In this document: positions 19,188 through 56,049 of the stretch, in pieces
Layout of the letters: every line of letters begins with the position of its first letter
How positions within the stretch are numbered: position 1 is the stretch's first letter
NCBI RefSeq assembly: GCF_020745735.1
Contig: NW_026867636.1
Coordinates: forward strand, 222,388 to 286,387
Source of the DNA: Hemiscyllium ocellatum
Taxonomy: Eukaryota
Reading direction: 5' to 3'
DNA length: 64,000 nt
The notes under the pieces: generated by a model
The model's input: the letters and a program-made list of their open reading frames with translations, nothing else
Told to the model about the DNA's origin: nothing
Databases searched by the model: none
Position numbers and translations under genes: made by a program

Positions 19188-19330
19188 GCAGGTTTATTCT
19201 TCAGCACTAACTTTCCGAGCGCTGCTTCTGCATCATGCAGCTGATGAACAACTGATGAACGACCAGTGCTCAGAATGCTCGTGTTTCCAAACAAACCTGT
19301 TTTGACTATAACCTGGCGTTGTCTGTTTTT
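19188..19330. mobile_element. Short fold-back of the Penelope pLTR family seen at 7899-8470
   Basis: CAGGTTTATT...CACTAACTTTCCGAGCGCTG mirrored by CAGTGCTCAGAATGCTCGTG...AAACCTG; ends ACTATAACCTGGCGTTG. Confidence 0.65.
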
Positions 19331-20789
19331 GAGTATATGAATACCGGTACACCTCGTTACGAATCATCATTAAGGGAATCAAAGGTTATGGGTGAAGCTC
19401 ATGAAAACAATGTAAAAAGTATTGGATTATCTACGTTGTTTTTGAATGGATTCGAATTGACGGGTTGGCAGGCGTCCTTCTGCGCCCATATCTCACTTGG
19501 AATTCAATGTCTCCAGTACTCACTCCTTCTGCGCATGCTCCAGAAAAGTTTCGGCACTGTACCTGTGAAGTGGAATCCATCGCGTATAATGTATTTATTC
19601 TGGTATTATGAGCGTGCATGTTGGAGCTGTGATAATCGTCGAGTCGTTCAGGTTATGGAATGAGCATGAGTTCCGTGGAAATTCTTGCAATTAAGACTTT
19701 GTTTATGACTATAAAGGCACGACCATGGATTTGTCAGTACTGCAGAATACGGACCTTGCGTTTTACTTTTGTGTATCCATCAGCATCACAAAATTAGCAG
19801 TCTGAAACTGTAGAATCTTTAGACACAGTAGCGTTGCCAATTCATCTGAGACACTGTTTCAAAATACTAATTTCTGCGAGCATGTGTTACTTTCCACAGC
19901 TGCTCTATTTCCCCGTACCTCACCTTCAGAAAATGTCACAGGACTACCGTGGTGAAAATAAAATATATCTGCCGCTTTCAGCCATGAAGGTAATAATTTT
20001 TAGTCCATTCACTACCCCTGCTGCTTAATTTCAGTTTGAGTTACTGGGCTTGGGGAAGTGGGGGGCGTGCGGGAGTGGGCAAAGTGTTGACCTTTTCAGA
20101 CAGCAAGTCAGGACCGCCTTAAAATGATAGGTTCCCATCTTCTGTCCACTCTGGGAGTTCCTGTCCTTCAGGAAGTGAGTTTCTCTTCATGCTGAACAAC
20201 CTGCTGTAAGGCTTTATTTCAAAAGAATGCGCAATTATGAACAACGAAACATACATTTACAGAGTGCAAGCCACCATCTAAAGCCAACTCAAAAAGTTTC
20301 AATTTCAGTTTGGCAATTTCCAAATTACCGACGCTGGAGGACATTAGAAGTCCATTCCTGCTCACCGAGATCCCTCAGACAGTGATCTGACGATGGGTAG
20401 TTCACATGTTTTCATTCACGACGACTGAAGGATAATCTTCTAACAGCAGAACATTTGGGTTAATTTCTCTTTGCCCCATTGTCCTTCCATTTGTGATCAT
20501 TTAATATCAACCGTTATTATTCTACCCGCATATTTTCACCGAAATGACAATTTGTCCAGCTAAAACCTTTTGTGAAAGCTAAGTAATAATTCTTCTGAAA
20601 TCCTCTGGAACGCATTCCAATATAAGCTTCTTCTCCATGGCCAACATCTTAATCAATCCGCAGCATTGGCAAGTTATGGTATTCGCATGCTGAACACAGC
20701 ATTTCAAAGTAAAACACTTTTATGCCTTGGTTCCATAATTGTCGCAAGTTATATCAAAGGGGGCAGAAAAACTGGTTCAAAGACGTAGA

Positions 20790-21025
20790 ATGATAGAATT
20801 CCAACGATACATTGAGGCCACACCGAACCTCCAAACTGTATCGTAACGAGACATAATCCCCCAACCTGCATGTCTTTGGACTGGACGAAGAAACGGAAGC
20901 ATCTGAAGGAAACCCACGCAGATCGAGGAGACTGAACAAACTCCACAGAACCCATGGGTTCAATTGAACCTGACTGTACAGCGCAGTGAGGCTGCAGGGC
21001 TACCCATTGGTCCAAAAGGCCCATG
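20790..21025 (-). mobile_element. HE1-type SINE fragment (mirror copy 53560-53860 +)
   Basis: AACCTGCATGTCTTTGGACTG...AACCCACGCAGA...AAACTCCACAGA body. Confidence 0.7.
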
Positions 21026-21339
21026 ACATTAAATGCTCACTGAAAATACTGTCATCAAACTGGGAGAATCTCTCGGTAAATGCCGCCCAATGTGGATAAG
21101 AAGCTTCTGTGAAATATCCAACCATTTTATGCATCTCTGCCAATTCCAATGGAAAAGTAATTATTTTCACAGACAGGAGGATTAGTGAAACGAGCATCCC
21201 ACATATTCATCTCATCACTTGTCTAAACAAATATAGAGATTGTGGATCCAAAATTAAATTATTTAATTCGTTCAGGGCACACAACTGTGCAGTGGATGAC
21301 AGTCATCTTCAGGCGCATTGAATCTCCAATTTGACACGA

Positions 21340-23125
21340 CGAATTAATGGTCTAAAACGGGTCATGAGATGCATTCAGCGAACAGGGTTCATGAAAATCC
21401 CAAAACCTTTTAATCATACTAAAGGTAAAGACGATCACAAGGGAAATGGGTGGCCCACTGAAAGACAAAAGAGTAAATATATGCCTGGGAATTGGATGAG
21501 ATTCGTAATGCAAACGTTGCGTCGGTATCCACCATGGGCAGTGGAATGGCAGGGTATGAGGTTGGGTATAGATGTTTGATTACTCCAGGTCAGGTCGGCA
21601 TCAGGAGGGAGGATGCACTGGGTAGTATCAAAGGCACTAATGTGTACGAGTCAGTGAACACGATGGAGGCCGCAGGAGACTGGCAAATTACTGATGTTGT
21701 CCCCTTGTTTCAGAAGGTTAACATGGATAATCCAAGTAATTACAGACCTGTGAGCCTGACGTCAGTGGTAGGGAAGCTACTGGACATGATAATGAGGGAT
21801 AGAGTATGTACCAATTTGTAAGAAAATGGGGTTGTCAGTGATAAATAACATGGTGTTGTGCATGGAAGGTCATATGCAACAAACTAATAGAATATTTGAA
21901 TAGGTGTCAAAGGCAATTTATCAGGGAAGAGATGTAGACGTCATGGACATGGACTTCAGTTAGGATTTTGATAAGTTTCCCCATTGTAGGCTGATGAAGA
22001 AGTTGAATTTGCACGCGATCCAGGGTGTTCTAGCTAGAGGAACATAGAACAGGTTGGGCAACAGGAGAGAGAGAGAAGAGAGAGTGATAGAGTAATAGTG
22101 GATGGGAGCTTTTCAAATTGAAATCAGTGATCAGTTGGTGTTCTGTTGGGATCGTCCTAGAACCACTGTTGCTTGTGATAAACATAAATGATTTGGAAAA
22201 TGATGTAGGTTGCCCATGAACACGTTTGCAGACCACGATAAGATTAGTCGATTAGCAGATAGTGAAGGTGACTGTCAGAGAATACAGCAGACTATAGATA
22301 GTTTGGAGAACTGGGCAGAGAAATGGCAAATGGAGGTCAGTCGGTCAAATGTGAAGCGATGCACTTTGGAAGAACCAATTAAAGAGCAAACTGTAGAGTA
22401 AATAGAAACGTCATGGGGAAAATTGAAGTTCAGAGAGACCTAGGTGTTCAGGTCCATTGTCCGCTGAAGCTGGAAAAGCAGGTAATTAAAAATGGGAAGA
22501 AGCCATACGGCATGCTTTCAATCGTCGGAAGGGATAGTGAATAAAGCTGCATAAGACTTTAGTTCAGCCTTATGTAAAATTGCAACAGTTCCGGTCTCCG
22601 CATTACCAAACAGATGTGTGTGATTTGAGGAGGTCGCAGAGAAGGATGACTAGGATGTTGTCTGGTATGGAGATTGTTAACTATAAGGAGAGTTTGAGTG
22701 GATTATGATTATTTTCATTGCAAAGGAAGAGCCTGAGGAGAGACCTGATTGTGGCCTAAAAATCGATGAGATGTGTTGACAGGATGGATAACAAGAAACA
22801 TTTTCACAGAGTAGTTGACTCAACTACTAGGAGCCACGTGATCAAAGTGAGAGGGCGCAAAGTTTAGCAGAGATATACGTGGAGCTTTCTGCAGTTCGAG
22901 GCCGGGAGGTGCCTGGAAAGCTTTTCCAGTTGAGTTGGTTGGAGCATGCATGATAGCGTCATTTAAGATATATCTGGACAGATACATGAATAAGCAGGGA
23001 GCAAAGGGATACCGATCCTGAGAAGATAGGCGACAGGTTTAGACAGAGCATCTGAATAGTCACAGGCTTGGTGGGCCGAAAGGCCTGTGGTGGTGGTGCA
23101 ATGTTATTTGTTCTTTATTCTTTAA
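21340..23125 (+). mobile_element. CR1 LINE inside left arm
   Basis: DWQITDVVPLFQK...NPSNYRPVSLTSVVGKLL; FADHDKI; WAEKWQME; complete 3' tail. Confidence 0.9.
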
Positions 23126-24319
23126 AGATAGGCTTTACAAGAGGTATCATTGGAAGTTCAGTTTGGATATTTAGAATACATTTTGTAGATTCTGTGAATA
23201 TACCACTGCGTGTAGAAGTATAAACTCCTACCTCCCACATGCGTCCTCCTTATCTCGGTTCGGTATGATGAGTTATGCGACAATGTTCCTGCTTTTCCCC
23301 AAATAGCTTTCAGTGAAGATGCAGATTTTCGGGTTCAGCTTCAGCATGACTGAACGTAAGAAAATAATAACTCCGACCTGAGTAGGCGAGGACGTGTGCA
23401 GATCATCCTTTCAACACTTCATCAACATCGGAAAGAATGAAGACTGAGCTCACCTCCTCACTGGGATTTCCTGAACACTGAAAACTTCTTGACCCTTCAA
23501 GCCAAAGTTAATTCGAAACTTGTTTCTCTGCTTTAAATTTGTTCCGAGCCCTGGCACGACTTAAGTTTAGGGGAGTGATAAGATTAGATTCGCTCCTGTA
23601 TGGAAACAGGCCCTTCGGATCGATTCCCAGAGATCCCCAACACTTTTACAGAAGGATATTTCTCCACAACTTTGGCCTAAATCTCTTCTTTCTATTCCTC
23701 TCCAACTCACAGATGTCTGAATATTATTTCCGATGTCAGAAAGTTTTTTTTTGCTTTTGGCTAAGGGGTGTCACCGTGAACTCCACTGATAGCCCAAATG
23801 ACTTGCGAGTCTGAAAGGGTAATCTGTTCCCACAACACCGGACCCCACACCTCTGACATACGTTCTGAAGTGCACCAGTGGATTCATGGAGACTACAATC
23901 GACGAGGCATGTAAAGTTGGGAACCGCGCATGTGGGAAGCTGTCACGGGAATCTGCAAGTGTTTAACAACTGTTTGGGAAGGTACACATTCAGCTCTGTA
24001 ATTAGTAGAGAAAGACAGCATGTGATTTGTTCTTTGGGTAGAGACAAACAAAACTACAAATGATGGAATACAAGGTAGACAAGCAGGAGGTTGGCAAAAC
24101 ACAGCAAACCACGCATAAGCAAGTGGTGGCGACGTAAATGTTTCAAGCTCAACCCTTCTTCAAGAACTGTCACAACAGAAACATTGACTTTTCCCCATCC
24201 TGGTGCTGCCGGGTTTATTCATTAAATTATGGGTACAATGTCCCCACAGCCAAGTCGTTCTTCGTTCTCTCCTACGATCATTTTAATACGATAATTGACC
24301 AACAGGAAAACATGGAAGG

Positions 24320-24490
24320 CAGTAGTACTCTGGTCCTCCAACCAATCAGAGCTGTCCTATTGCCTGAGTGCCAGCATTGAACAATGAGCTTGTATAGCTG
24401 CTCCTATCTGCTAAGCAGAGCTGTGATGCTGCTGTCTGAATAAAGGTGGAGTTTCACCTAGAATCCAACTTCCTCCAGGGTTAGCACAAC
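24320..24490 (+). mobile_element. Small solo-LTR-like sequence (mirror copy ~49953-50130 -)
   Basis: CCAATCAGAG, TGTATAG, AATAAA in LTR order, ending CACAACA. Confidence 0.4.
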
Positions 24491-26442
24491 ACTAGCAGCA
24501 CATTTTTTTCCTGTTCATTTCCTCTCTTATTAAATTCTTAGATTAAGTATTTAACTTGTAGAACTGAAGGAAAACAAGGAGAACCTAGAAAGGGAGCAGG
24601 GACTGTCCAGGACAAGAAGGGTTGATTGTTTATTTGTTCATAGAAACCTGAGGAGAATGTGGTGGGTATACATTATAGTCAGCGGCCTGACACTGGTGGA
24701 AAAGATGGTGTGAGGTGGAGGGTTACACAGATTTCGTGGAAGAGAGAGGAAAATGCCACTCTCAAAAATCGGGAATTGTTTGTTCTGAGTTCCTAATCTA
24801 TTCTTATTAACTGTGTAACTCCTTTTATAGGAATCTAGAAGTAAAAGTTTGACAAAGAGAGGCCTTCTGTGACTAGCCTCTCACATGCTCTCTTGCTCTC
24901 TCTCTCTTCTCCAGTTTATAGACCACTGCTTTTGTTTTTTTTTTCCGAAAGTTCCAAAAACAACACAAAAGCTTACAAAGCCGTATTAAATTCTTCAAGA
25001 AATCGAATAAATTAGCTGCAGCAAGCAATGAAGCTCAAAGCAAAGAAGCAAGCCTTGCAAACACGATTCTCTCCCATTCCCTATTTAATTCCATTTTCCC
25101 ATGGAGACCACGCCGTATTCTGGTTGGATGAGCCTTTCGCTGATATTTAAGCTTTCAAAGACTCAACGAGACACGCAACATGGAGGAACTGAAAATTTGA
25201 CATCCATGGGAAGGGATTATATTCCATGTCAACACTGGGGTTGCTTCAACATGGTTGCAGCAGGGAGAGGCCATTTATCTTCTCGGAATACGGGAAGGAA
25301 TTCACTGATTTGTTTGCCCTCTCGAAACACAGCTTGCTGCCACTGGAGAGAGGGCACTGACCTATCCTGAGTGTAGGAAAACAATCAGTGAATATCTTTC
25401 CTTGTTGAGACACGTGCAGGCAGGTGGGGCTAGTTTTGTTTAGGATATCTGGTCAGCATGGACGGGTTGAACCGAAGGGTCTGTTTCCATGCTGTAAATC
25501 TCTATGAATCTATGACTAGTGAGGTCACACAGGGGAGAGTTCAACCATCTGCTTGCAGTATGTAAATCTAATAACTCAGATTTCCTGTTTTTATATGCAC
25601 CATTCCATTCACACTGCCGCGTATCATTGTGTTTCGTTATTATTTTTTGTCATTGTGGAAAAGAGATGTACTGGCGAATTGTCACTGGAAAAAGGTTATT
25701 CATCTGGACTGAGTCTGGGAACGGATTCACTCAGTCAACAAAACTGCGGAAGGATGAGCGTATTCACAAATACCTGAAGAGGCAGGGGCTGGATCTTCGG
25801 TGAATCAACAATTTTACATGATCTTTCAAATTGAATTCCAAGGTCTCAACCACAACCATGCAGGAGCACAAAGGAAACAGTTACGTCACAACATGCAAAC
25901 TCCCCTCCATGTCATGTACCAGCCTCTGGTTGAACAATGTTAGCTGTTCCTCTACCTGAACTTTGTCAAAGTCCTGTGAATAACTTTCATCTTCAGGTTG
26001 AATGCAAACGGTTCTGCAAAAAAATCAGTTTTCAAGACTCAGAAATGTCTCAGGAAAGCAGCTGTTGATACTTGTCCGAATGTGACTTTCAGAAGGGCAA
26101 TACACTGACTGAAGCAGAGAAAATAGGAGTAGGAACAGGTCATTCAGCCCATCTTGCGTGATCTCCCATTCATTATGCTCACAGCTCATTCTGTATCTTG
26201 GCGCTATATTCCCCGTTCTCTCCATACCGTGTGATATATTTAATCTCCAATGTATGAGCAATCTTTTTCCTTGAATCAATTGAGTACCTTGACCTATACA
26301 GTTGTCTGTGGTTGAGAATTTCAGTTTGAAAGCCAATTCCATTCAATATGTTCTCCTCCATGTCCGGACACTTTGACATTTGGTTTGAGAATCCCAGAAC
26401 TGGTTGAATATCCTCCAGGCATCTGATGTGTTCAACACAAGT

Positions 26443-26752
26443 GGGCGGCACGGTGGCACACTGGTTAGCACTGCTGCATTACAGCGCTAGAGACCTAGCT
26501 TCATTTCCTGACTCAGGCGACTGACTGTGTGGTGCTTGCACATTCGCCCCGTGTCTGCGTGGTTTTGCTCCCGTTTCCTTCCACAACTCCTAAAAAATGT
26601 GTAGTTTCCGTGAATTGGCCACGTTAAATTCCCCGTTGTTTTAGGTGAATGGGGTAAATGTAGGGGATTGGGTCTGGGTGGGTAGCACGTCGGCGAGTCG
26701 GTGTGTACTTGGTGAGCCGACGGGCCTGTTTCCATAGTGTAGGTAATCTAAT
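26443..26752 (+). mobile_element. HE1-type SINE (mirror copy 47681-47972 -)
   Basis: GGCGGCACGGTGGCACACTGGTTAGCACTGCTGC head, central core, GGGCCTGTTTCCATAGTGTAGG...ATCTAATCT tail. Confidence 0.85.
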
Positions 26753-28271
26753 CTGCCCCTGCCCCATTCATACTTCTGATTATACGTTCAGGTGAAGCAA
26801 CCTTTCCTCAGGAACAGTCCTCTCGCTACGTCTGTTAGCCAGGCGAATCTTGGCTGCATTCCCATTGAATGCCCAGTTCATAATTCCAGGCTTTGAGTTA
26901 AGTGAGCTTTCTGACTGGATTTTATAACATCGGAACATGACAATGTTACGTGTGCATTCACATCTCATCATATCATCCACTTTGCTGTCTGACTCGTGTG
27001 AGGTATTTTTGAAATGTTTACAGAACAAATATACTATGGTAAAATGTGATTCATGTTTGCAGAAAAATAGAAAATAAAACAAAATACTCTTATTTGAAAT
27101 GGTGAGAAACTATTAAACGTTATTTTCCACGGGGTTTATGCCATGTGAAATCTAACATGATCATAGAGCCAACAATGTGCAGGACAAACAATACACTGTG
27201 GTTATTGTCACTGTATTAGGAACATGGGTAAGTGTTGTGAATTTCTTTTGGTCTGTAATTACATTTCACTGAAGATATTCACATATATTTCGGGATCCTA
27301 CATCGCAGAGTCGCTTTGTGGCACATTCCACACGCGCAAACACAAAAACATGCAGACACAGAACCTCTCATGCAAACTCCAGCACACAGACAGTCGTACA
27401 GTCGAAAACACACTGAATGGTATAAAAGCACTGGTACATGCTCACAGGCACACTCAGACATGGACTGTCAATTTGTCGGTCACGAAGACGTGTACACACA
27501 CGCACTGTAATATATGTACCCTCAATTTCACGAGTGCGCACACGCGCACATGCACACAGAGAAACAGACACATGGAACCTTACACACTGACAAACTTAAT
27601 CAGTCTATTTTAACACTCCTTCTCACGTACTTGTAACACTGTCTGACCTATATGTACTCAATGACAAACTCCCTTACCCTGATAGGCACACAATCCTTCA
27701 CACAAACACACATGCGTTTGCACACGTACGTTCTCATATAGACATACACGATCTCCAACATATCTGTCTGACATCGGCACATTCCCTCATATATACACAC
27801 GAGAACATTCTCTCAAAACACACACGCACCTGCTCGGCCAATCCTCAGATACAGATTAACGTTCCATCAATTTTCGAAGTTTATAAAAGATGGACATTTC
27901 CTTCACAACCACGGAAACACATGCAAGAGTGGGGCGTTGTGAGTACATGTCATTGGATCGTTGATCACTCTCAATACCACATATTATATACTTTATCCTG
28001 TCAATCTACATTTATCCACACCGAAAACACCCAGAAATATTGAGGATGGATTTAGATGCAAGGCAGCGTGCCTCTACAGTGTTCCAGTCATATTCTTTCC
28101 GAAAACAATGGCATGGGGAGCTCGTTCCATGATGTTCCAATCAGCTTTGTGAAGCACAAGCAGAATCTGACCAGAGATCTCGCATTAAAGTCAGTTTAAC
28201 CAGTCTCTCTTACATGCTTCCGTTCAAAGCACAATTCTGAACTCTTGATTCAGACATGAAGAGTCAAAATA

Positions 28272-28490
28272 TCAAAACAAAGTGAAACAACTGCAGGTGT
28301 TGTAAATCAGAAGCAAAAACAGAATTTGCATGAAAAGCTCAGCAGTTTTAGCAGCATCTGTGAAGAAAAGTCATGTTAATGTTTCGGTTCCTGTTTTCAG
28401 AACAATGGCTAATAGACCAGGAACATTTGTTCTGATTTCTCTTCCCAGATGGTGCCAGAGCAGCTGTGCATGTCCAGCAATTATTTTTAT
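28272..28490. mobile_element. Penelope-pLTR-derived fold-back element
   Basis: AAAGCTCAGCAG..GCAGCATCTGTGAAGA mirrored by TCTTCCCAGATGGTGCC..AGCTGTGC. Confidence 0.55.
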
Positions 28491-29154
28491 TGATCGGCAT
28501 TATATATAATTCGGTTTTAAAAAATACTCAAAAGGAACTGAAATCCTCCACAAATTCATGTTATGCGTTCAGAAATCTCTGCTTTGTTCTGATTCTCGTT
28601 TGGATTCGTGCTTTAATACATTCACATATGAAGATGTCCTAATCTCATGACCTATATCCTCTTTCCAAACACAGCACATAATTCCAATTCGCTGTGTGAA
28701 ACAGAACCCTCACAGTGTAAGGAAGAGGTGAGTCTTGAGCCAAATCTGTGTTAAATCTGATCTCTCGGCAAAGTCAAATGAAACTTGTTGAATATATCAA
28801 GGATTCAAATCTCTCCATTTGTTTTTCCCCTTTCAAAATTCACAGGATAGTGTCAGCAGATTTGAAAAGAGATAAATAATATCTCTCTTTGCTGTGCACA
28901 TGCACAAGTAACATAACAATCCTGGGTCCGAGACAGAGTAAGTCTTCTCCAGACTATCCTCATTAAATGCTCCCAGAACAGGTGCAGCATGGTGGGAGAA
29001 CTAGAGTAAGATATCGCATCTAGTTTATCTCATCGAAAAATCTTTGGCCCCAGATTTCACATCCCATCTTCAAACTGCTCGATGCCTGCAGAAAAGTCTC
29101 TGAGTCTTGCCTGAACATTTGGGGAGCTATTCATCTCAGTAAGCCATTACAACT

Positions 29155-29223
29155 ATCTCTCTCTCTCTCTACCTGTATCTTTATCGCCCTTTTCTGTCTT
29201 CACTTCCCCAATTATCACTGTCT

Positions 29224-29257
<34 letters not shown>

Positions 29258-29265
29258 CTCACTCG

Positions 29266-29310
<45 letters not shown>
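29155..29310. repeat. (CT)n microsatellite
   Basis: Long CT runs. Confidence 0.9.
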
Positions 29311-29311
<1 letters not shown>

Positions 29312-31747
29312 CTCTCTATACCGGTATCTTTGTCTGGAACTTCTCTGTTTCCCTTGCTAACCTCTGTGGTTGTTTCTTAGCAGTATGTTATTAAATTGTA
29401 AGGTTAAGGCAAATTGCGTACTGAGTGTAACAGTGTTTGCTATGTCTTGGAGTGTCTCCGAATTACTTCGGGGGGGCGGCAGTAAATAGCTTATTCAGCT
29501 GATACAAGTCGTTAAGCCGGGATCAATGATTCTGGTGAAGGGAACAAGTGCAATATATCGCACGTTCTCTGACATAACCTCGCTGGGTGGGACTGAAAAC
29601 TGTGCCAACAACTAAAGTGGCTATAAACAAATACATACAGCTTCCTCGCGTGACCAATTAATCGGTAGATGGAATATAATCTGTTGAAATGTCCCCGTGC
29701 AGCCGGAATCTCTGAACTAACTCAATAACACATTAACATCCCCGTTCCCTGCCCAGTTAACACTGTCAGAGCCAGTGAAGTTTTGGCCCTTCGGAAGAGA
29801 AATGTAATGACTGGATATTATCACATTGCAACATGGAGGAATAGTGTAACAGCCAGTATCATTCACACATGTCACTCCCTTATTCTAATGTTCATTCCTT
29901 CACTTTAATGCTCACTCTTCCATTATCACTGACACTGTCTCAGGCACACACTCACTCCTCCGTTTTTACACTGATACTCTGATTCCCTTAGAGTCGTAGT
30001 CACTCCCTCACAATCACAGTTATACTGACTCACCCACAGATACACTGACTCTATTACAGACGCACTCACTCTCTCAAAGTCAATTTACTCTCTCAGATAC
30101 ATTTACCCATTCACTGTTACTCTCACTCCCAGTTTTCCGCCCTCACTGTCACGATCACACTTTCACCGTTCCGCTCATCTCCTCACTGGCATACTTAATA
30201 CCTCACTGACACAATGAGTCCCTCAATTCATTTTCACTCCCTCACTCTCACTCTCTCATTGTCACAATCAGTCTTCCAGTGTCACTCTCCCTCATTCACT
30301 ATCACCCCGTCACTCTCACTCACTCGCCATTATACTCACTCCATTTCTCTCACCCCCACACTCTCACTCCCTCACTCTAAATGTCGTTGCCTCAGAGTCA
30401 CAATCTTTCCCCCAATGTCAAACTTATCCTCTCACTTTATCATCGTCACATTCTCTCAATCGGTTGCACTCTCATTTTCACTTATCAAGTGGCGTTCACA
30501 CTCTCACTGTCGCCGTCACAACCTCATAGTCACGCTCAAACCTGACTTTCATTCTACTTTATCAATGTCGCAATTACTCTCTCACATTGACGTTCACACG
30601 TACACTGTTAAACTGAATATCCTGTTCTCATATTACTATCAGTCTGAACACACGGGGTCACTTTCACTCCCTCACTGTCAATCCCTCTCTCACATTCACT
30701 CTCTGTCATGAACATTCAATTACACTCACTGTCTCACTCAGTCTCCCACATCGTAAATCCCCTACTCTCACTCTCAGTCCCTCACTCTCTTACACTCACT
30801 TCACTTTCTCACAGTCATGCTCAATCCCTCACAGTCAAACCCACTCAATCACTGCCAGACGACAACCACACTGTCACACTGACTGTCTCACAAAATGTCA
30901 CACTAACTGCCGGAAAATCCGTACTGTACCTCACTGTCAATGCCACACCCCCTAGTCATCGCCGCTACCCACAATCATCATCACTCTTTCACAGTCAGTC
31001 TGTATTCGCACTCTACTATTACCACAATGGCTGTCTCGCGTTCCCACTTAGTCCTTCACTGCAGCCCTCACTCACTTACTGTCACACTGACGCTCTGAAT
31101 TTCGCGTTTCATCCGACACAGTTACAATTACTCCCAAACTGACAACCTCATTGCCACAAATTACATGATGTATCTCACTGTCAGTGCCAATTCCATCACA
31201 GTCAGATTCACTGCCTTACTTTCAACCTCGGTCTCCCAAGGTCACACCCAGACATTCACTGTCCCACTCACTCCCTCACAGTCACACTGACTCTCTCACA
31301 TTTAGACGCAGTTGGGGACAGTTACAGTTACTCCCGTACTGCCATATTCACTGCCACAAGGCACATGTAATATTTCATGGTCAGTATCACGCCCTCACAG
31401 ACACCGCCACTCTGTCACAGTCATCATGCGCTGAGGCAATCTGCTTCATGCTCACTCAATCACATTCACGCCTACTCCCTCGTTGTCACACTCACTCCCT
31501 GAGAGACACGCTAACACCCTTACAGTCCCTCTCCTTCCCTCACACTCTCACTGACTCTGCCACTGTCGCACTCACTCCTTCATAATCACATTCACTCTAT
31601 CACAGTCATGCTTACTCTCCCACTGTCCCACACAGTCAGTGACTCTGAAACTCACGCTTTCGCAGTCACACTGATTCTGTCACATCCACGCTCGGTCTAG
31701 CGCAGTGCATTTATTATCAGATGAGTAGTTGAGACGTTATTTTTTAA

Positions 31748-32035
31748 GATTAGATTACTTACAGTATGGAAACTTCAGCGCCACAAATCCACACCGACCC
31801 GCAACCCACCCTGACCCATTTGCCTTCATTTTCCCCTTCACCTCACACTTCGGACATGTTAGCATAGCCACTTCACCTAACCTGCACATTTTTGGACTGT
31901 GGGAGTAAAGCCGAGCACCCGGAGGAAACTCATGCAGACTCAGGGAAAATGTGCAAACTCCACACAGTCAGTCGCTTGAGGTAGGAATTGAACCCAGATC
32001 TCTGGCGTTGTGAGGCAGAAGTGCTAACCACTGTT
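31748..32035 (-). mobile_element. HE1-type SINE
   Basis: TAGATTAGATTAC tail to GTGCTAACCACTG head. Confidence 0.85.
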
Positions 32036-32081
32036 ATAACACACTATAACACACTGAAGTGCAACCTGCGACTCTCAGGAA

Positions 32082-32156: not shown

Positions 32157-32166
32157 AGACGATCCA

Positions 32167-44910: not shown

Positions 44911-44929
44911 ATGTTCTTAAACTTTTAGT

Positions 44930-45420
44930 CTGAGCAAACAGGCTAATATTTGTTTCAACTAGAAATAAGAGGAAACCTCAAATTATACAAGAGTCGGTCA
45001 AATACTTAGTTATATCTGAGAAAGTGTAACTGCAATGCAGAGAGAAAAATTAAATCGAAAGTTAAACAATTAGAATTAGAAAATAAGGACAAGGAAATAG
45101 GAGGAAGAAAAGGGACTGAAGCGTTTAGAATTGCGGTTACAAGCAGGAGAAAGAGGAAGAAAACGAGAGAAAAAATGGAATGAATGTCTGAAGTGGAAAA
45201 GATGAAGATGGAACGTGAAGAAAAATATAACTCAAATGACAGAAGGATAGTTACAAGGTGGAAATTAAGGTGTGCAACTCCTCATAGCTAACAAACCGGT
45301 AGGGTAAGTACAAATATGTCCAAACGTTACGAAAATTTGATGGTAAAAGACTGTGGACGACTTCCTCCTTTCCATTTAGAATTTAGCTCGGCAGACGGAC
45401 TGGTTCATAGCTATTTGGGC
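44930..45420 (+). mobile_element. Gmr1-like Gypsy gag N-terminal fragment
   Basis: E/K/R-rich stretch then YKYVQTLRKFDGK/VDDFLLSI*NLARQTDW, resembling the P.F.E.DVE.FF..FE..A....W gag motif. Confidence 0.65.
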
Positions 45421-45424
45421 AGAA

Positions 45425-46310
45425 AATCGGTTGCTGGAAAAGTGCAGCAGGTCAGGCAACGTCCAGGGAGCAGGAGAATCGATGTTTCGGGCATGAGCCC
45501 TTCTTCAGGAATGAGGAAAGTGTGCCAGGCAGGCTAAGATAAAACGTAGGGTTGAGGGACTTGGGGGCGGGGCGGTGGAAATGCACCAGGTGGAATGAGG
45601 TTAAGGTGAGGGTGTTAAGTTGAGGGTGATAGGGCGGAGTGGGGGTGGGGGGCGGAGAGGTCAGGAAAAAGATTGCAGGTTAGGAAGGTGGTGCTGTGTT
45701 CGAGGGTTGGGACTGATACAAGATGGGGGGAGGGGAAATGGGGAAACTGGAAAAATCTGAGTTCATCCCTTGTGGTTGGAGGGTTCCTAGGCGGAAGATG
45801 AGGCGCTATTCATCCAGCTATCATGATGCTATCGTCTGATGATGGAGGAGTCTAAGGACCTGCATGTTCTTGGTGGAGTGCGCGGGGAGTTGAAGTGTTG
45901 AGCCACGGGCTGGTTGGGTTGTTTGGTCCTGGTGTCCTAGAGGTTCTCTCTGAAACGTTCCGCAAGTAGGCGGCCTGTCTCCCCAATACAGAGGAGGGCA
46001 CATCGGGAGTGATGTGTGTGGAGGTGCAGGTGAATTTGTGGCGGATATGGAAGGTTCCCTTGGAGACTTGGAGGGAAGTAATGGGGGAGGTGTGGGCGCA
46101 CATTTTGCATTTCTTTCGGTTGCAGGGAACCATGCCAGAAGTGGAGGTTGGGTTGGTGAGTGGTGTGGACCTGACGAGGGAGTCAAGGAAGGAGTGGTCT
46201 TTTCGGAACGCTGATAGGGGAGGGGAGGGAAATATATCCCTGGTGGTGGGGTCCGTTTGGAGATAGCGGAAATGACGACGGATAATACGATGTAGATGGA
46301 GTTTGGTGGA
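45425..46310 (-). mobile_element. Penelope-like element, 5'-truncated
   Basis: PCNRKKCKMCAHTSPITSLQVSKGTFHIRHKFTCTSTHI (GIY-YIG region); same family as 40366-41668. Confidence 0.9.
45481..45508 (-). ncRNA. Minimal hammerhead ribozyme core in Penelope pLTR
   Basis: CTGAAGA-A-GGGC-TCAT-GCCC-GAAA-CATC: CUGAnGA box, 4-bp stem II, GAAA, NUH triplet. Confidence 0.65.
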
Positions 46311-47249
46311 GTGGAGTTTGAGTCCTCGACATATTCAACATGTTTCCTTTGACTTTGCCGAGAGATCAGATTAAACAGATTTGGCTCAAGACCTATGTTC
46401 AATTATTCTGGGTGTTTTGGGCGTGGACAAATGTAGTTTGACTGGATAAAGTGTATAATATAAGGTATTGAGAGTGACCAAAGATCAAATGACGTGCACT
46501 CGCAACGCCCCACTCTTGCGTGTGTTTCCGTGGTTGTGAAGGAAATGTCCGTGTTTTAGAATCTTAAAAAAATTATGGAGCTTTAGTCTGTATCTGAAGC
46601 TTGGCCGTGCAGGTGCGTGTGTGTTTTGAGAGAATGTTCTCGTGTGTGTATGATGGAATGTGCAGATGTCAGACAGATATGTCGCAGATCGTATGCGTCT
46701 AAATGAGAACGTACGTGTGTTAAAGCATGTGTGTTTGCGTGAAGGATTGTGTGCCCGTAAGGGTAACCGAGTTTGTCATTGAGTACATATAGGTCAGACA
46801 GTGTTACAAGTACGTGAGAAGGAATGTGAAAATAGACTGATTAAGTTTGTAAGTGCATAAGGTTCCAAGTGTATGTTTCTCTGTTTGCAAGTGTATGTGT
46901 GCACGCGCATGATATTGACGGTACTTGCATTACAGTTTGTGTGTATATGTGTGTTTGTGACTGACAACTTGACAATCCATGTCTGATTGTGCTTGTGAGC
47001 ATGTGTCAGTGCGTTTATACTAGTGTTTTTGATTGTACGACTGTCTGTGTGCTGGAGTTTGCATGAGACGTTCTGTGTCTGCATGGTTTTGTGCTTATGT
47101 GTGTAGAATGTGCCACAGAGCGACTGTGCGACGGGAAATCCCGAAATATATGTTAATATCTTCAGGGAAATGGAATTCCAGACCAAGAGAAATTCACAAC
47201 ACTTACACATGTTCGTGACACAATGTCAATAACCGCAGTGTATTATTTG

Positions 47250-48340
47250 TCCTGCACATTGTTGGCTCTATTATCATGTTACATTTTGCATCGCATAACC
47301 CCTGTGGAAAATAACGTTTGATAATTTCTCACCATTTCAACTAAGAGTATTTTGTTTTATTTTCTATTTTTCTGCAAACATGAATCACTTTTCACCACAG
47401 TATATTTATTCTGTAAACATTTTTAAAATGCCTCACACGAATCAGACAGCAAAGTGGATGATATGATGAGATGTGAATGCACACGCAACATTTTCATGCT
47501 CCAATGTTACAATATCCAGTCGGAAATCTCACTTAACTCAAAGCCTGGAATTGTGAACTGGGCATTCAATGGGAGTGCAACGAAGGTTCGCCTGCCTAAC
47601 AAACGATGTGAGAGGATGGATCCTGAGGAAAGGTTGCTTCACCTGTACATATAATCAGAAGTATGAGTGGGGCGGGGGAAATTAGATTACTTACATTGTA
47701 AAACAAGCCCTTCGTCCCAATAAGTACACACCGACTCGCCGAAGCGCTAACCACCCAGACCCAATCCACTACATTTACCACTTCAGCTTACACAACTGGC
47801 AATTTATCGTGGCAAATTCACGGATCCTACACATGTCTTTAGAGTTTTGCGATGACAGTGAAGCCAACCCACGGGGCGAATGTGCAAACGCCACACAGTC
47901 AGTCGCCTGAGGTGAGAACTGAACATGGGTCTCTGATGCATTGAAGCATCATTGCTAACCAGTCCGCCACCGTGGAGATCTGAGTGGCATGGCTCCCATT
48001 GTAACAGTTTTGAACACATCAGACGCCTGGAGGATGTTTCACCAATTCTGGGATTCTATTCTCAAACCAAAGGTCAAAGTGTCCAGACATAGAGGAGAAC
48101 ATATTGAACGGAACTGGCTTTCAATCTGAAATTCTCAACCGCAAACAGCTATGTAGGTAAGTTTCTGAATAGAATCAAGTAAAAGATTGATCATACATTG
48201 GAGATTTAATATATCACACGGGACGGAGAGAACTGAGAAAATGGGGCCAAGATACAGGATGAGCAGTGAGCATGCTGAATGGGAGACCACGCAAGATGGG
48301 CTGGATGGCCTGTTCCTGCTCCTGTTTTCTCTGTTTCCGT
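47250..48340 (+). mobile_element. Very old CR1 3' end interrupted by the HE1 SINE (mirror ~26110-27190 -)
   Basis: GGGAGTGCAACGAAGGTTC (GVQRRF), GAGGAAAGGTTG (EERL), GATGGCCTGTTCCTGCTCCT tail. Confidence 0.7.
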
Positions 48341-51334
48341 CAGTGTATTGTCCTTCTGGAAGTCTCATTCTGGCAAGTATCAACAGCTGCTTCCTTGAGA
48401 CATTCCTCAGTCTTGAAAACCTGAAATTCTTTGCAGAATCATTTGCATTCAATCTGAAGATGAAAATTGTCCACAGGACTTTGACGAAGTGATGGTAAAG
48501 GAACAGCTAGCATAGCTCAACCAGAGGCTGGTACATGACATGGAGGGGAGTTTGCATTTTGGGACATAACTGTTGCCTTTGTGTGCTCATGCACGGTTAT
48601 GGTTGAGACCTTGGAATTCAATTTGAAAGATCATGGAAATTGTCGATTCACAGAAGATCCAACTCCTGCCTCTACAGATATTTGTTAATAAGCTTATCTT
48701 TCCGCAGTTTTGATGACTGAGTGAATGCTTTCCCACACTCAGTCCAGATGAATAAACTTTTTTCCTGTCAGAATTCGACAGTACATCGCCTTTCTACAAT
48801 GATAAAAATTAAATGGAAACACAGCAGTGTGAATTGAATGGTTCATCAACAAACAGGAAGTTGAGTTATCAGATTTACATACTGCAAACAGACGGTTGAA
48901 CTCTCCCCTGTGTGACCTCACTGGTCATAGAGTCATAGAGATGTCCAGCATGGAAACAGACCCTTCTGTTCAACCCGTCCATGCTGACCAGATATCCCAA
49001 ACCAAACTAGCCTCATCTGCCAGCACGTGTCTCAACAGGGAAAAATATTCACTGTTTGTTTCCCTACACTCAGTGTAGCTGAGTGTCCTCTCTCCAGGGG
49101 AAGCACGCTGTGTTTCCAGAGGGCAAACACATCTGTGAATTCCTTCCCATATTCCGAGAAGATAAATGGCCTCTCCCAGCTGTGACCATGTTGAAGAAAC
49201 TCCAGTGTTGACGTGGAATATAATCCCTCCCCATGGAAATCGATTTTTTAGTTCCTCCATGTTGCACGTCTCATTGAGTCTTTGAAAGTTTGAAAATCAG
49301 CTAAAGGCTCATGCACCCAGAATACGATGCAGTCTTCATGGGATAAATGAAATTAAATGGGGAATGGTAGGGACTCGTATTACTTGTTTTTTTTTTGCTT
49401 TGAGGTTCATTACGTGCTGCAGCTCATTTCTTCGATTTCTTGAAGAATTCATTACGGATTTGTAAGCTTTTGCGTTGTTTTGGAACTTTTGGAAAAAAAA
49501 TCAAAAGCAGAGGTCTTTTGAACGGGAGAAGAGAGAGACAGCAAGAGACCATGTGAGAGGCTAGTCACAGAACGCATCACTCTGTCAAACTTTGACTTCT
49601 AGTATCATATAAAAGGAGTTACACAGTTAATAAGCATAAGCAAAACTCAGAACAAACAATTCCCGATTATAGAGAGTGGCATTTTCTTCCCTCTTCCACG
49701 AAATCTGTGTAACCCTCCACCTCACACCATCTCTGTCACCAGTGTCAGGCCGCTGACCATAATGTATACCCACCACATTCTCCTCAAGTTTCTATAAACA
49801 AATAAAGAGTCAACCCTTCTTGTACTGGACAGTCTCTGCTCCCTTTCTGGGTTCTCCTCGTTTTCCTTCAATTCTACAAGTTAAATATTTAATCTCCGAA
49901 TTTTATAAGAGAGGAAATGGACAGAAAAAAAGATATAATATTGTTTTGACAGTGCTGTGCTCACCCTAGAGGAAGTTGGATTCTAGGTGAAACTTCACCT
50001 TTATTCAGACAGCAGCAGCAGCAGCAAAAGCTCTGCTTAGCAAGAAGGAGCAGCTATACAAGTTCATCGTTCAACGTTGAAACTCAGGCAATAGGGCAGC
50101 TCTGATTGGTTGGGAGACCAGAGTACTTACTGTCTTCCAAGTTTTCTTGTTGTATTGTTGTATTAAGATGACCGTGGGAGTGGGACCAAGAACGACTTGG
50201 CAGTGGGAATGTTGTACCCATAATTTAATGAATAAACCCGGCAGCACCAGGATGGGGAGAAATCAATGTTTCTGGTGTTACAGTTCTTGAAGAAGTTTCG
50301 CACTCGAAACATTTACGTCGCCACCTCTTAATTCTGCCTAGTTTGCTGCGTTTTGCCAACCTCCTGCTCGTCTACCTTGTATTCCATCATCTGTAGTTTT
50401 TTTGTCTCTACCCACTGAAAAAACCCGCATGCGGCCTTTCTCTACGAATTACAGAGCTGAACGCGTACCATCCCAAACACTTTTTAAACATTTACAGATT
50501 CCCGTGACAGCTTCCCACATGCGCTGTTTCAAGTTTACCTGCCTCGGTCGATTGTGGGAGTTGTAGTCTCCATGAATCCACTGGAGTTCTCTGGAACGTC
50601 TGCAAAAAGTATGGGGTGGAGTATTGTGGGAACAGAACACCCTTTCAGACTCGCACGTCATTTGGTCTATCACTGGAGTTCACGGTGACACCCCTTAGCC
50701 AAAATAAAAAAAAAGCTTTCTGACATCAGAAAGAAAGATTCAGACATTTATGAATTGGAGAACAATAGAAGGAAGAGATTTATCCAAAGTTGTGGAGAGA
50801 TATCCTTGTGTAAAAGTGTTGGGGATCTGTGGGAATCATTCCAAAGGGCCTGTTTCCATACAGGAGCGAATCTTATGTAATCTCTCCCCTAAATCTAAGT
50901 GATGCTAGGGCACGGAACAAAATTAACGCAGAGATACAGGTTTTGAATTAACTTTGGGTTGAAGGGTCAAGAAGTGTTCAGTGTTCAGGAAATCCCAGTG
51001 AGGAGTTGACCTCAGTAATCATTGTCTCCAATGTTGGAGTAGTGTTGAAGGGCTGATGTGCACCCCTCCTAAACTTCTCAGGTCGGAGTTTTTATTTTCC
51101 TACGTTCAGTCATACTGAAGGTGAACCCGAAAATCTGCATCTTCACTGAAAGCTATTTGGGGAAAAACAGGAACATTGTCGCATAACTCATCATACCAAA
51201 CCTCGATAAGGAGGATGCATGTGGGAGGTAGGAGTTTATACTTCTATACGCAGTGGTATATTCACAAAATCTACAAAATGTGTCCTAACTATCCAAACTG
51301 TATTTCCAATGATACCTCTTGCAAAGCCTATCTT

Positions 51335-53230
51335 TAAAGAATAAAGAACAAATTACATTACAGCACCACAACAGTCCTTTCGGCCCGCCAAGCCTGTGAC
51401 GATTCAGATGCTCGATCTAAACCTGTCGCCTATCTTCTAAGGATCTGTATCCCTTTTCCCCCTGCTTATTCATGTTCCTGGCCAGATATATCTTAAATGA
51501 CGATATCTTTCCTGCCCCAACCACCTCAACTGGCAACGCTTTCCAGGCATCTACTGTCCTCTAAATGCAGAGAGCTCCACGTATATCTCTGCTAAACTTT
51601 GCCCTCTTACTTTGATCACGTGGTCCCTAGTAGTTGACTCATCTACTCTGTGAAAAGTCTTCTTGTTATCCGCCCTGTCAACACATCTCATGGATTTGAC
51701 GGCCGCAATCAGGTCTCTTCTTTCTTTCATCCCTTCTTTCCAATGAAAATAATCATAATCTACTCAAACTCTCCTCACAGTTAACAATCTCCATAACAGG
51801 CAACAGGCTGCTCAATCTCCTCTGCGCCCTCTTCAAATCATCCACATCCGTTTGGTAATGCGGAGATCAGAATACTCCAAAATGGCTGAACTAAAGTCTT
51901 ATGCAACTGTACTCAATATCCCGTCCCACTTTCCCACTTTAATTATCTGCTTTGCCAGCTTCAGGGGACAATGGACCTGAACAACGAGGTCTCTCTGAAC
52001 TTCAATTTTCCCCAGGACGGTTCCATTTTCTCGACAGTTCATTCTTTAATTGGATGTTCCAAAGTGCATCACTTCGCATTTGAATGACTGAACTCCATTT
52101 GTCATTTCTCTGCCCTGTTCTCCAATCCATCTATAGTCTGCTGTATTGTCTGACAGTCACCTTCACTATCTTCTCTTCGACAAACCTCATCGTGATTTGC
52201 AAACGTGTTAATGGGGCAACCTACATCACCCTCCAAATCATTTATGTTTATCACAAGCAACAGTTGTCCTAGCACGATCCCCGGAGAACACCAACTGCTC
52301 ACAGGTTTCCATTTTGAAAAACACCCATCCACTATTACTCTCCACTACTTAACAGAATTCTGTTTTTTTTTAAATGCACGGCTTTTGTTCGTGTANNNNN
52401 NNNNNNNNNNNNNNNNNNNNNNNNNNNNNNNNNNNNNNNNNNNNNNNNNNNNNNNNNNNNNNNNNNNNNNNNNNNNNNNNNNNNNNNNNNNNNNNNNNNN
52501 NNNNNNNNNNNNNNNNNNNNNNNCTGTTCTTCTAGGTAGAACACCATGGATCTCATGCAAATTCAACTTTTTCATCAGCCTACCATGGCGAACTTTATCA
52601 AACGCCTTACTGAAGTCTATATATGTTACATTTATCTCCCTTCCCTGATAAAGTGCCTTTGACACCTCTTCAAAGATTCTATTAAGTTTGTTAGGTATGG
52701 CCTTCCATGCACAACACCATGTTATCACCATGACAAACGCATTTTATTCCAAATTGGCGCATACCCTATCCCTCATTATCATGTCCGGTAGCTTCCCTAA
52801 CACTGACGTCAGGCTCACGGGTCTGTAATTACCTGGATTATCCATGTTAACCTTCTTAAACAAGGGGGCAACATCATTATGTTACCAGTCTCCTACGACC
52901 TCCATCGTGTTCACTGACACGTCCACCTTAGTGCCTTTGATAATACCCAATGCATACTCCCTCCTAAAGGCGACCTGACATATTGTAATCAAATATCTAT
53001 ACCCAACCTCAACACCTGCCATTTCACTGTCCACGGTGAATACCGACGCAATGTATGCATTCAGAATCTCACCCAATTCTCAAGCATATATTTACTCCTG
53101 TGACTTTCAGTGGACCACCCATTTCCCTTGTGATCGGATTTCTCTTTACATATGATTAAAAGTCTTCAGTGTTTTCATGAAACCTGCTCGCTAAGTGTAT
53201 ATCATGACCCCTTATGACCAATTATTCCTT
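51335..53230 (-). mobile_element. CR1 LINE inside right arm (mirror of 21340-23125)
   Basis: YIDFSKAFDKVRHGRL; same internal deletion junction as the left copy. Confidence 0.9.
52396..52523. other. Assembly gap (128 N)
   Basis: Run of N. Confidence 1.
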
Positions 53231-54944
53231 GTGTCAAAGTGGAGATACACTGACTCTGAAGGTGACTGTCATCCACTGCACAGTTGTGTGTCCCGAACGA
53301 ATTAAATAGTTTAATTTTGGATCCACAATCTCAATATTTGGTCAGACAAATGTTGAGATGAGTATGTGGGATGCTCGGTTTACGAATCCTCCTATCTAAA
53401 TAATTACTTTTCAACTGGAATTGGCAGATATGCATAAAATGGTTGGATAGTTCACAGATGCTTCTTCTCCAAATTGGACGGCATTTACCGAGAGATTCTC
53501 CCAGTTTGATGACAGCATTGCGTTTTTTTTTATCCAGTGAGCATTTAATGTCATGGGCATTTTGGTCCAATGGGTAGCACTGCAGCCTCACTGGGCTACA
53601 CAGTCGGGTTCAATTGAATCCTCGGGTTCTGTGGAGTTTGTTCAGTCTCCTCTGCGTGGGTTTCTTTCAGATGCTTCCGTTTCTTCGTCCAGTCCAAAGA
53701 CATACAGCTTGGGTGGATTGTGAGGTTGCTAAATTTCCCATAGTGTTCGGGAATTTGCAGATGAGGTTGTTTCGCCTTGGCAAATGTAGAGTAACGGAGA
53801 CAGCGTGGGGATGATGTCTGTTAGGAGCTTCGATGTGGACTCAATGTACCGTAGGGATTGTATCATTCTACGTCCTTGAACCAGTTTATCTTCCCTCTTT
53901 GATATCACTTCCCCGAATTATGGAACCAAGGCATAAAAGTGTTTTGCTTTGAAATGCTGCATTCGGCATGCGAATACCATAACTTGCCAAAGCTGCAGAT
54001 TGATTAAGGCATTGGCCACAGAGAAGAAGCTTATATTGGAATGCATTCCAGAGGATTTCGGATGAATTATTACTTACCTTTCACAAAAGATGTTATCTGG
54101 ACAAATTGTCATTTCGGTGAAAATATGCGGGTAGAATATAACGGTTGATTTTAAATGATCACAAATGGAAAGGCAATGGGGAAAAGAGAAATTAACCCAA
54201 AAGTCCTGCTGTCAGATGTTTATCCTTCAGTCATCGTGAATGAAAACAGGTGAACTACTCATCGTCAGATCACTGTCTGAGGGATCTCAGTGTGCAGGAA
54301 TGGACTTCTAATGTCCTCCAGCGTCTGTAATTCGGAAATTGCCAAACTGAAATTGAAACTTTTTGAGTTGGCTTCAGATGGTGGCTTGCACTCTGTAAAT
54401 GCATATTTCTTTGGTCATAATTGCGCATTCTTTTGGGATAACTCCTTACAGCAGGTTGTTCAGCAAAAGAGAAACTCACTTCCCGATGATCAGGAACTCC
54501 CAGCGTGGACTGAAGCTGGGAACGTATCATTTTAAGACGGTCCTGACTTGATGACTGAAAAGGTCAGCACTTTGCCCACTCCCGCGCTTCCCCCACTTCC
54601 CCAAGCCCAGTAACTGAAACTGAAATTAAGCAGCAGAGGTAGTGAATGGACTGAACATTATTACCTTCATGGCTGAAAGCGGGAGAGATTTTTTTTTCAC
54701 CACAGTCGTCCTGCGTTTTGTCAGATTCTGTAAATAGATGATAGGGTTGAGAGCACATCGGAAACACATCAACACACCAAAGCTTTTTCTGTCATATGAA
54801 GGTATTGAAAGGAACTATTAAAATATTTCTTTCATTGACTGTCACTCTAAGTTAACACTCATATAGAGTGCTCCAAGGAGAGTTCTTCTTTCCAGTCTAC
54901 ACTCCACTCTGTCTCTATAACAGCCTGCCTATCTGTCAGACACA

Positions 54945-55165
54945 AATGGAAAATGACATCTGCAGATGATGGAGAGTTTGAGTCGAAAAAGTCTGGTGAT
55001 GGGAAAAAGCACAGATGATCTGGCAGCCTTTGAGAGCAGAAGTGTCGACGTTTCGGGCATAACCCTCCAAAGACTCATGATGAAATGTTATGCCTGAAAC
55101 ATAGACTACGTTATTACCGGAAGAGTCCCCGAACTGCTCTGCCTTTTCCATCACCACATTCTCAA
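54945..55165. mobile_element. Penelope-pLTR-derived fold-back element in the right-arm-only segment
   Basis: GACGTTTCGGGCATAAC mirrored by GTTATGCCTGAAACAT; GGTGATGGGAAAAAGC mirrored by GCCTTTTCCATCACC. Confidence 0.65.
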
Positions 55166-56049
55166 ATACAGCCTCAAATCTTTACACAACATTTTACCGT
55201 TCACGCACAAGCATTTATATTCACATTGCATCTCCTCACATTTCCTGCAGCATGGAAACAATATACACCTCTTGATTCAAATCTGAACTGTCACTTGCTT
55301 CTCCAAAGATAGTTTCTGACATTTTTTGGAGGTGAGGTACGGGGAAATAGAGCAGCTGTGTAAAGTACACACTTATCTTCGCAGGAAGTAGAATTTTGAA
55401 ACAGTGTCTCAGATGAATTGGCAACGCTACTATGTCCAAAGATTCTACAGCTTCAGACTGCTAATTTTGTGATGCTGACGGATTCACAAAAGGAAAAAGC
55501 AAGGTCCGTATTCTGTGGTACTAACCAATCCATGGTCGTGCCTTTATAGTCATGAAAAAAGTCTTAATGGCAAGAATTTCCACGGAGCTCATGCTAATTC
55601 CATAACCTTAACGACTCGACGATGATCACAGCTCCAATATGCACGCTCATAATACCAGAATAACTGCATTATGCGTGATGGGTTCCAATTGACAGGTGCA
55701 GTGCCGAAACTTTTCTGGAGCATGCGCAGAAGGAGTGAGTACTGGAAACTTTGAATTTCTAGTGAGATACGAGCGTAGAAGGACGTCAGTCAGCCCGTCA
55801 ATTCGAATCCATTCAAAAATAACGGAGATAGTTCAATAATTTCAACTTCATTTTCATGACCTTCACCCATAAACTTTGATTCCCATAATGATGATTCGTA
55901 ACGAGGTGTACCGCTATTCATGTACTCATTGTTTTTTCTCTCCACAAACGCTGCCCATCCGACTGAATTTTGACAGTGTTTTGAGCCTGTATCAGAATTA
56001 AAGTCTCATCAAAATTTTGCCTTTTTTCAACGAGTTAAAATATATCTGT

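Follow-up and report, generated by a model that had tools for sequence, protein, structure and literature searches.

A 64,000-nucleotide stretch of the Hemiscyllium ocellatum genome (referred to here as the window, its positions serving as coordinates throughout) contains a large inverted duplication, in which two arms face one another across a spacer and the inner end of the right arm is joined to a direct copy of a 0.9-kb segment found within that spacer. Judged by sequence, each arm is ordinary genomic DNA of mosaic make-up, and the structure as a whole is an old inverted duplication. The account that we favour, with moderate confidence, is of an ancient, two-copy, non-coding duplication, most likely the product of a single event in which a patch of ~10.5 kb, copied from two nearby templates, was pasted in. 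The principal parts of the structure are these:

19330 to 28817, forward strand: left arm, 9,488 bp, a collinear inverted match to 55928-46312 and probably the template copy
28818 to 46311, no strand: spacer, 17,494 bp, in which neither a protein domain nor internal mirror symmetry was found
46312 to 55928, reverse strand: right arm, 9,617 bp, inverted and probably the derived one of the two
40412 to 41303, forward strand: DR1 (direct repeat 1), source of the 0.9-kb direct copy and a composite of two unrelated repeat families
45430 to 46314, forward strand: DR2 (direct repeat 2), a truncated copy of DR1 in direct orientation, joined to the right arm's inner end
28050 to 28731, no strand: left-arm-only stretch, 682 bp, including repeat fragments, of which 28284-28394 matches a whale-shark repeat
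54714 to 55316, no strand: right-arm-only stretch, 603 bp, including a high-copy repeat (depth peak at 54970-55166)

The left arm is the reverse complement of the right arm, collinear over its full length. A repeat search of the window returned 39 inverted repeat pairs, all in strict collinear order, and blastn merges these pairs into a match of 19330-28043 to 55928-46399 plus one of 28732-28809 to 46392-46317. Both edges of the duplication are sharp. Arm identity begins abruptly on the outside, at 19330/55928, and on the inside contiguous homology ends at 28809/46317, with an extra CTCCA at 28813-28817 that matches TGGAG at 46312-46316. Sensitive searches found no mirror symmetry beyond the arms, either outward or within the spacer. 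A first-pass annotation of this DNA had placed the arms at 19330-28815 and 46312-55928, with ~9.5-kb arms, a ~17.5-kb spacer and a total of ~36.6 kb; these figures are right to within a few bases, the right arm being exact, the left arm ending at 28817 and the entire structure measuring 36,599 bp.

Global alignment of the two arms with MAFFT gave 8,700 aligned sites with 87.1% identity and a Kimura two-parameter distance (K2P) of 0.142. The measured divergence of 12.9% lies inside the 10-20% that had been judged by eye, and private indels, also noted then, are indeed present, the large ones being the 603-bp and 682-bp stretches listed above. Differences between the arms comprise 1,119 substitutions (570 transitions and 549 transversions) as against 59 indel events. 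Identity reaches 90% over the outer 2 kb of the arms and 84-88% in the remainder, and the sliding-window scan proposed as a check on the structure gave values of 0.78-0.92 per 300 columns, the homology remaining collinear across unrelated mosaic sequence. At sites in a CpG context 32% of positions differ between the arms, compared with 11.3% at other sites; strong CpG decay of this sort, combined with a divergence dominated by substitutions, is the pattern expected for neutral vertebrate DNA. Segmental duplications are catalogued at ≥1 kb and ≥90% identity, a level that is reached here in the outer 2 kb only, and the overall figure of 87.1% indicates that the duplication is older than the usual 90% cut-off. 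Transitions and transversions are about equally frequent in the arms (570:549), as they are in an intron of the receptor gene described below when compared with whale shark (227:246); such a ratio is low for vertebrate neutral DNA and may reflect alignment noise or a property of the lineage.

Interspersed repeats occupy matching positions in the two arms. One such repeat (26443-26754, equivalent to 47679-47980) has two further copies in the spacer, and another (21920-22672, equivalent to 51789-52649) has relatives at 749-3565 and in the whale shark. Their matching positions indicate that the repeats are older than the duplication, as the first-pass annotation had held, although the names CR1 and HE1 that it gave to nested elements were not confirmed. 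An ‘LTR-like piece’ that it saw nested in the arms proved instead to be the 0.9-kb direct repeat in the spacer, which is not a pair of long terminal repeats (LTRs).

The junction at which DR2 meets the right arm is composite. DR1 and DR2 are 85.0% identical (K2P 0.168). The last position of DR2 is 46314 and the arm copy takes over at 46315-46317, so that the two copied segments abut at one site. TGG there, possibly TGGAG (46312-46316), could have come from either the DR or the arm source, an overlap of 3-5 nt. The first of the two repeat families that make up DR1, family a, has copies at 14241-14344, 54938-55065 and 58439-58706 and in a whale-shark locus (L001, 8636-8900). In DR1 it starts at 40358-40375, which is 35-50 nt to the left of the start of DR1–DR2 homology, and no family-a match extends past the start of DR2. 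The second, family b, has a copy at 16496-16762 and in DR1 runs to at least 41314, beyond the end of DR homology at 41303; where the homology stops, DR2 changes to arm sequence. Since DR1 continues both families past both ends of the homology, DR2 is a segmental copy with breakpoints inside two different repeats. That the inner end of the right arm is joined to a direct copy of spacer segment 40412-41303 is a new observation. Outside CpG contexts, the DR pair has diverged by 12.5% ± 2.3% and the arms by 11.3% (p=0.33); as these values are indistinguishable, the DR and arm duplications are of the same age within error. An LTR retrotransposon was considered for the pair (40412-46314) and rejected: the repeat starts GTTGCTGG and ends GGTGG, with no TG...CA ends, the flanks differ, no domains lie between the repeats and the unit is a composite of two families.

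A single event provides the best explanation for this arrangement because the arms are collinear from end to end, the edges are sharp, DR2 and the arm copy abut and the DR pair and the arms have diverged equally, and because the spacer size and the inverted microhomology are as in human fold-back duplications (where the latter is 2-8 bp), strings of several templates also being known. The process would have begun with a break or collapsed fork somewhere between about 45429 and 55929. A free 3′ end could then have copied 0.9 kb in direct orientation from DR1 (40412-41303), 4-5 kb upstream, before switching, at the 3-5 nt overlap (TGGAG versus CTCCA), to the opposite strand at 28817, from where 9.5 kb would have been copied in inverted orientation back to 19330. 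Joining of the new strand to 55929, without visible overlap, would have completed a patch corresponding to 45430-55928, and both copies would afterwards have decayed neutrally and gained private indels. Such a pattern would be that of replication template switching, for which MMBIR (microhomology-mediated break-induced replication) and FoSTeS (fork stalling and template switching) are models, or of fold-back-primed break repair, and may be described as a short chain of templated insertions. That there was a single event, which of the arms is the copy and what enzymology was involved are matters that we infer, going beyond what can be read from the letters themselves.

A number of points weigh against this account. 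No outgroup displays an empty site: the whale-shark locus L001 was tried in this capacity but aligns in the gene and intron only, the flank being too diverged, and it gives neither an empty site nor polarity. Equal divergence is consistent with one event without requiring it, as the interval on the DR pair (± 2.3%) is wide, and an overlap of 3-5 nt is weak evidence after 13% decay. On its outer side the left arm abuts an abundant repeat precisely at that repeat's natural end, a contact that the model leaves to chance. The argument from polarity would be weakened if the spacer had ever been inverted, and the copy number of the arm rests on 2.9 kb of one arm and on contig depths, which are not copy numbers.

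Two events might be envisaged in place of one. An older direct duplication would have made DR2, and a later break inside DR2 would have lost its distal part, the broken end then folding back onto CTCCA at 28813-28817 and copying the left arm, to give a plain fold-back duplication that was resolved interstitially. A history of this kind accounts just as well for the end of DR homology exactly at the arm, its spacer and microhomology fit published fold-back duplications (PMC3907307) and the point estimate for the DR pair is slightly the older (K2P 0.168 versus 0.142). The non-CpG divergences do not differ, however, at p=0.33, and the loss of the distal part of DR2 is an additional requirement, there being nothing like 41304 onward at 55929 onward. 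We regard two events as possible but unlikely.

The polarity of a single event might also be reversed, and here the repeat that borders the left arm comes into play:

19249 to 19329, forward strand: end of a very abundant short repeat, its natural terminus touching the outer edge of the left arm

In this scenario the right arm, which is contiguous with DR2, would be the original, and the left arm would have been pasted between 19329 and 28818, beside or together with the abundant short repeat ending at 19329. The exact contact between the natural terminus of the repeat and the arm speaks for such an origin: copies of the repeat at 7902-8022, 8351-8471 and 56466-56529 all end at the same terminal position. 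The coincidence of the DR2 breakpoint with the arm edge would then be a matter of chance, however, and no repeat lies across the reconstructed 19329|28816 join. The same is true of the other two reconstructed joins, 45418|55929 and 40400|41304, the one apparently spanning match being a BLAST extension artefact. A hairpin at 19180-19335 was considered as a block to copying and dismissed, the sequence folding no better than shuffled sequence (z=0.38). A Penelope-like stub with a hammerhead ribozyme fared no better: Rfam searches, which were conducted mostly on short stretches and at lax thresholds, gave no hammerhead family in the abundant repeat or in family a, and no Penelope signature in the repeats. 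On balance the opposite polarity appears improbable, and the left arm is retained as the probable template.

Several further features of the abundant repeats were apparent. The copies at 7902-8022 and 8351-8471 are inverted with respect to one another and lie ~330 bp apart. At 56349-56545, 57531-58318 and 58516-58712 summed contig depth is at least 10^5, compared with about 300-500 for unique sequence, the first of these intervals reaching a depth of ~123,000. Family termini are sharp at 56462-56466 and 58667-58669, and a CTGA.GA...GAAAC pattern can be made out by eye.

An inverted structure of this kind could arise during assembly, as a haplotig, a fold-back read or a scaffolding misjoin, and the right arm does contain an assembly gap:

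52396 to 52523, no strand: assembly gap in the right arm, 128 N, falling between left-arm positions 22044 and 22045 beside low-complexity sequence

One side of the gap aligns cleanly up to the N-run; on the other, (GA)n faces poly-A in a poorly aligned patch of ~40 nt before the alignment becomes good again. The right arm nevertheless aligns collinearly to the left arm across the gap, and the two contigs must therefore be correctly ordered and oriented, and little is absent by comparison with the left arm, although 52396-52523 could conceal a private insertion. No gene or reading frame crosses the gap, the open reading frames (ORFs) listed at 52205-52648 and 52345-52731 being artefacts of the N-run.

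Public sequencing runs also bear on this question. Contigs of four runs were placed on 53000-58900 (5,901 letters), and those from the right arm differ from the window by 1-5 letters. Runs X1 and X6 have a contig in which 54694-55317 is missing and which thus has the form of the left arm, the outer right junction is crossed by an X6 contig (55834-56184, with one differing letter) and the runs of further samples contain 58-60% of left-arm words. Arm-specific contigs come from several samples and at least two studies, one sample of which may be the assembly source, so that independence is not full. With contigs of several samples carrying each arm separately, and with a divergence of 12.9% that consists mostly of substitutions, an assembly artefact is scarcely credible; the view of the first-pass annotation that this is neither a haplotig nor a fold-back read is upheld. 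In a run labelled as organism B (X5), a few contigs are identical to the window on 53843-55956 at a depth of ~3, which points to a very close relative, a sample with the wrong label or material carried over from one library to another. This run was rejected for dating on account of that depth and of a junction contig with only 28 letters past the edge.

Alternatively, a large mobile element could account for the arms, either as two copies of it or as its long terminal inverted repeats. Both copies are sharp-ended, and the T-rich outer flanks could be a decayed target duplication (8/11 positions by eye). When ORFs of ≥60 amino acids were screened for domains, however, neither the arms nor the spacer yielded a transposase, integrase, polymerase or credible reverse transcriptase. 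The 100 ORFs of the two arms gave only five domain matches, all with E above 0.003, among them a marginal match to RVT_1 (E=0.0048); a match to the aerolysin-like ETX_MTX2 domain (ORF 27224-27613, E=0.005) was set aside as spurious, the translation being T/H-rich and derived from simple sequence of the CA type and the partner ORF having no match. None of the 106 spacer ORFs matched Pfam, and the 132 flank ORFs produced one fragment of a LINE (long interspersed nuclear element) endonuclease. The absence of an intact gene from the arms, as first reported, is in keeping with the lack of any credible domain among their ORFs.

Neither terminal repeats, direct or inverted, within an arm (blastn) nor a convincing target duplication at the arm ends could be found, and the arms have a mosaic make-up that includes older repeats also present in whale shark. 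Arm depth is also close to that of unique sequence: over the 2.9 kb of the right arm that was profiled (53000-55928, at ≥85% likeness) it stays within ~twofold of the unique flank, whilst known repeats (54970-55166, 56349-56545, 57531-58318 and 58516-58712) rise 10- to 1,000-fold. This is suggestive of a low-copy arm, with the proviso that the values are contig depths and not copy numbers. A mobile element is thus highly improbable. No RNA run on record contains the arm (two possible RNA runs have ~1% of its words), from which silence cannot be concluded. No function could be detected for the structure, which is probably inert.

Homologous exchange requires a minimum length of matching sequence. 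The longest exact match between the arms is 55 nt, compared with about 52 expected by chance at 87% identity, and the best 200-column window is 94.5% identical, none being higher. The arm alignment bears no sign of recent arm-to-arm conversion, and with exact matches this short, homologous exchange between the arms, and hence inversion of the spacer, is unlikely now. The suggestion that the palindrome could support spacer inversion or conversion is therefore unlikely to hold for the present day. With regard to age, the receptor intron differs from its closest whale-shark counterpart by a K2P of 0.46, and the arm K2P is about 0.3 of that figure; the arms would accordingly have split later than that intron divergence, a rough relative date that depends on an unproven orthology.

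More than a third of the spacer is taken up by a single tandem array:

29850 to 36330, forward strand: G-poor degenerate minisatellite, 6.5 kb, with units of about 20 to 60 nt

The array is 12% G and 35% C, with a GC skew of -0.4 to -0.5, and is broken by two copies of a ~300-bp repeat (31747-32034 and 32169-32483) that is present in both arms also. A triplex-type polypyrimidine tract was considered and discarded, as pyrimidines make up only 63% of the 6.5-kb tract and, (TC)n apart, no pure run in it exceeds 19 nt. Elsewhere in the spacer, a self-complementary hairpin of 140 nt (41534-41673) gives a weak match to a plant microRNA precursor (42.5 bits, versus a gathering score of 135) and is probably a small fold-back repeat rather than a microRNA gene. 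A second degenerate tandem array (17400-18990, 1.6 kb, unit ~32 nt, 11% A) lies 340 bp outside the left arm, and the long ORFs at 17767-18742 are products of it.

On the other side of the structure, beyond the right arm, lies a gene for a GPR139-like receptor of the rhodopsin type:

59596 to 60498, reverse strand: receptor exon 2, matching 7tm_1 (E=3.6e-9), with an in-frame stop at 60196-60198; outside the duplication
62074 to 62139, reverse strand: receptor exon 1, 22 codons, located by tblastn and translation

The layout is one of 22 codons, a 1.6-kb intron and then about 300 codons, with no gaps apart from the single stop; tblastn places residues 23-322 at 60498-59599 without gaps and the first 22 codons at 62139-62074. 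The 7tm_1 match and the tblastn placement substantiate the GPR139-like gene that the first-pass annotation had put 3.7 kb from the right arm. Its closest relatives, at 71% identity, are the proteins named ‘probable GPR139’ by NCBI in whale, zebra and bamboo sharks (Orectolobiformes). A search of Protein Data Bank sequences with the receptor exon found no match at 0.001. The stop codon stands where the whale-shark protein has glutamate, and the copy in the window is likely to be either a pseudogene of recent origin or a null allele. In the whale-shark locus L001 a second, partial tandem receptor copy occurs just upstream of the fetched one (3-2609 and 9884-12410), and both copies align to the single gene in the window.

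It had been proposed that the duplication might serve as the unit of rearrangement for the receptor region. When tblastn was run with the local exon together with eight full-length members of the family, no receptor remnants emerged from the arms, the spacer, the left flank or elsewhere in the window, and the sole receptor lies outside the duplication and carries a stop. Since the duplication is situated downstream of the gene, no part of which it copied, there is no support for a receptor-cluster rearrangement unit.

The structure has little meaning for gene function, no gene having been copied, no transcript being on record and the neighbouring receptor being a probable pseudogene. Its value is methodological and descriptive, in that the junction still displays the route of copying, with two templates and a short overlap. 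It would be possible to go further and to see here a germline fossil of one-pass, multi-template copying (direct 0.9 kb plus inverted 9.5 kb) that reflects a lineage-wide tendency to template switching, with abundant-repeat ends at two breakpoints perhaps seeding the process, but this wider proposal is tentative and, in our estimation, unlikely to be correct. A slowly evolving shark genome may keep many such scars, and counting, across the genome, the inverted duplications that are abutted by direct patches could gauge the frequency of template switching in vertebrate germlines. For annotators there is a note of caution: a palindrome near a receptor cluster need not belong to the expansion of that cluster.

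Among known systems, human fold-back inverted duplications have single-copy spacers of 766-70,466 bp and inverted microhomology of 2-8 bp (Hermetz et al. 2014; PMC3907307). The shark structure resembles these in having an inverted copy across a non-duplicated spacer, here of 17.5 kb, and a short junction microhomology, here of 3-5 nt; the single-copy spacer of 17,494 bp and the TGGAG/CTCCA overlap both fall within the human ranges, with the overlap made uncertain by decay. The human events differ in being megabase-scale and in ending in a terminal deletion, telomere or translocation. None of these is present beside the shark structure, where ordinary flank with the receptor gene continues at 55929. 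The shark case is, in contrast, 9.5 kb in length, interstitial, rejoined to the original flank and fixed long ago in the germline, and includes an extra direct copy where the spacer meets the inverted arm.

Strings of 2-7 templates at one locus have been described as templated-insertion chains, bridges and cycles and attributed to replication template switching (PCAWG, a pan-cancer study of whole genomes; PMC7025897). They share with the shark structure the joining at one locus of copied segments from distinct places, a low-level gain of copies, inverted segments and microhomology. They differ in being mainly somatic tumour events, often between chromosomes, whereas both shark templates are within 27 kb in cis and the event would be an old germline one, reconstructed from decayed sequence. 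Rearrangements of the duplication–inverted triplication–duplication type (DUP-TRP/INV-DUP; PMC11293582, PMC4352052) are similar in their iterative template switches and in the joining of an inverted copy to direct duplications. These are mediated by pre-existing inverted low-copy repeats, however, and contain a triplicated segment, and neither is seen in the shark structure.

The two-template junction is what makes the present structure mildly notable, as it can still be read; in other respects it adds one more case to a known class of structural mutation. The palindromes of sex chromosomes also have long inverted arms around a spacer, but these arms are gene-bearing and are held at >99.9% identity by gene conversion, whereas the shark arms are 87% identical and have neither conversion tracts nor genes.

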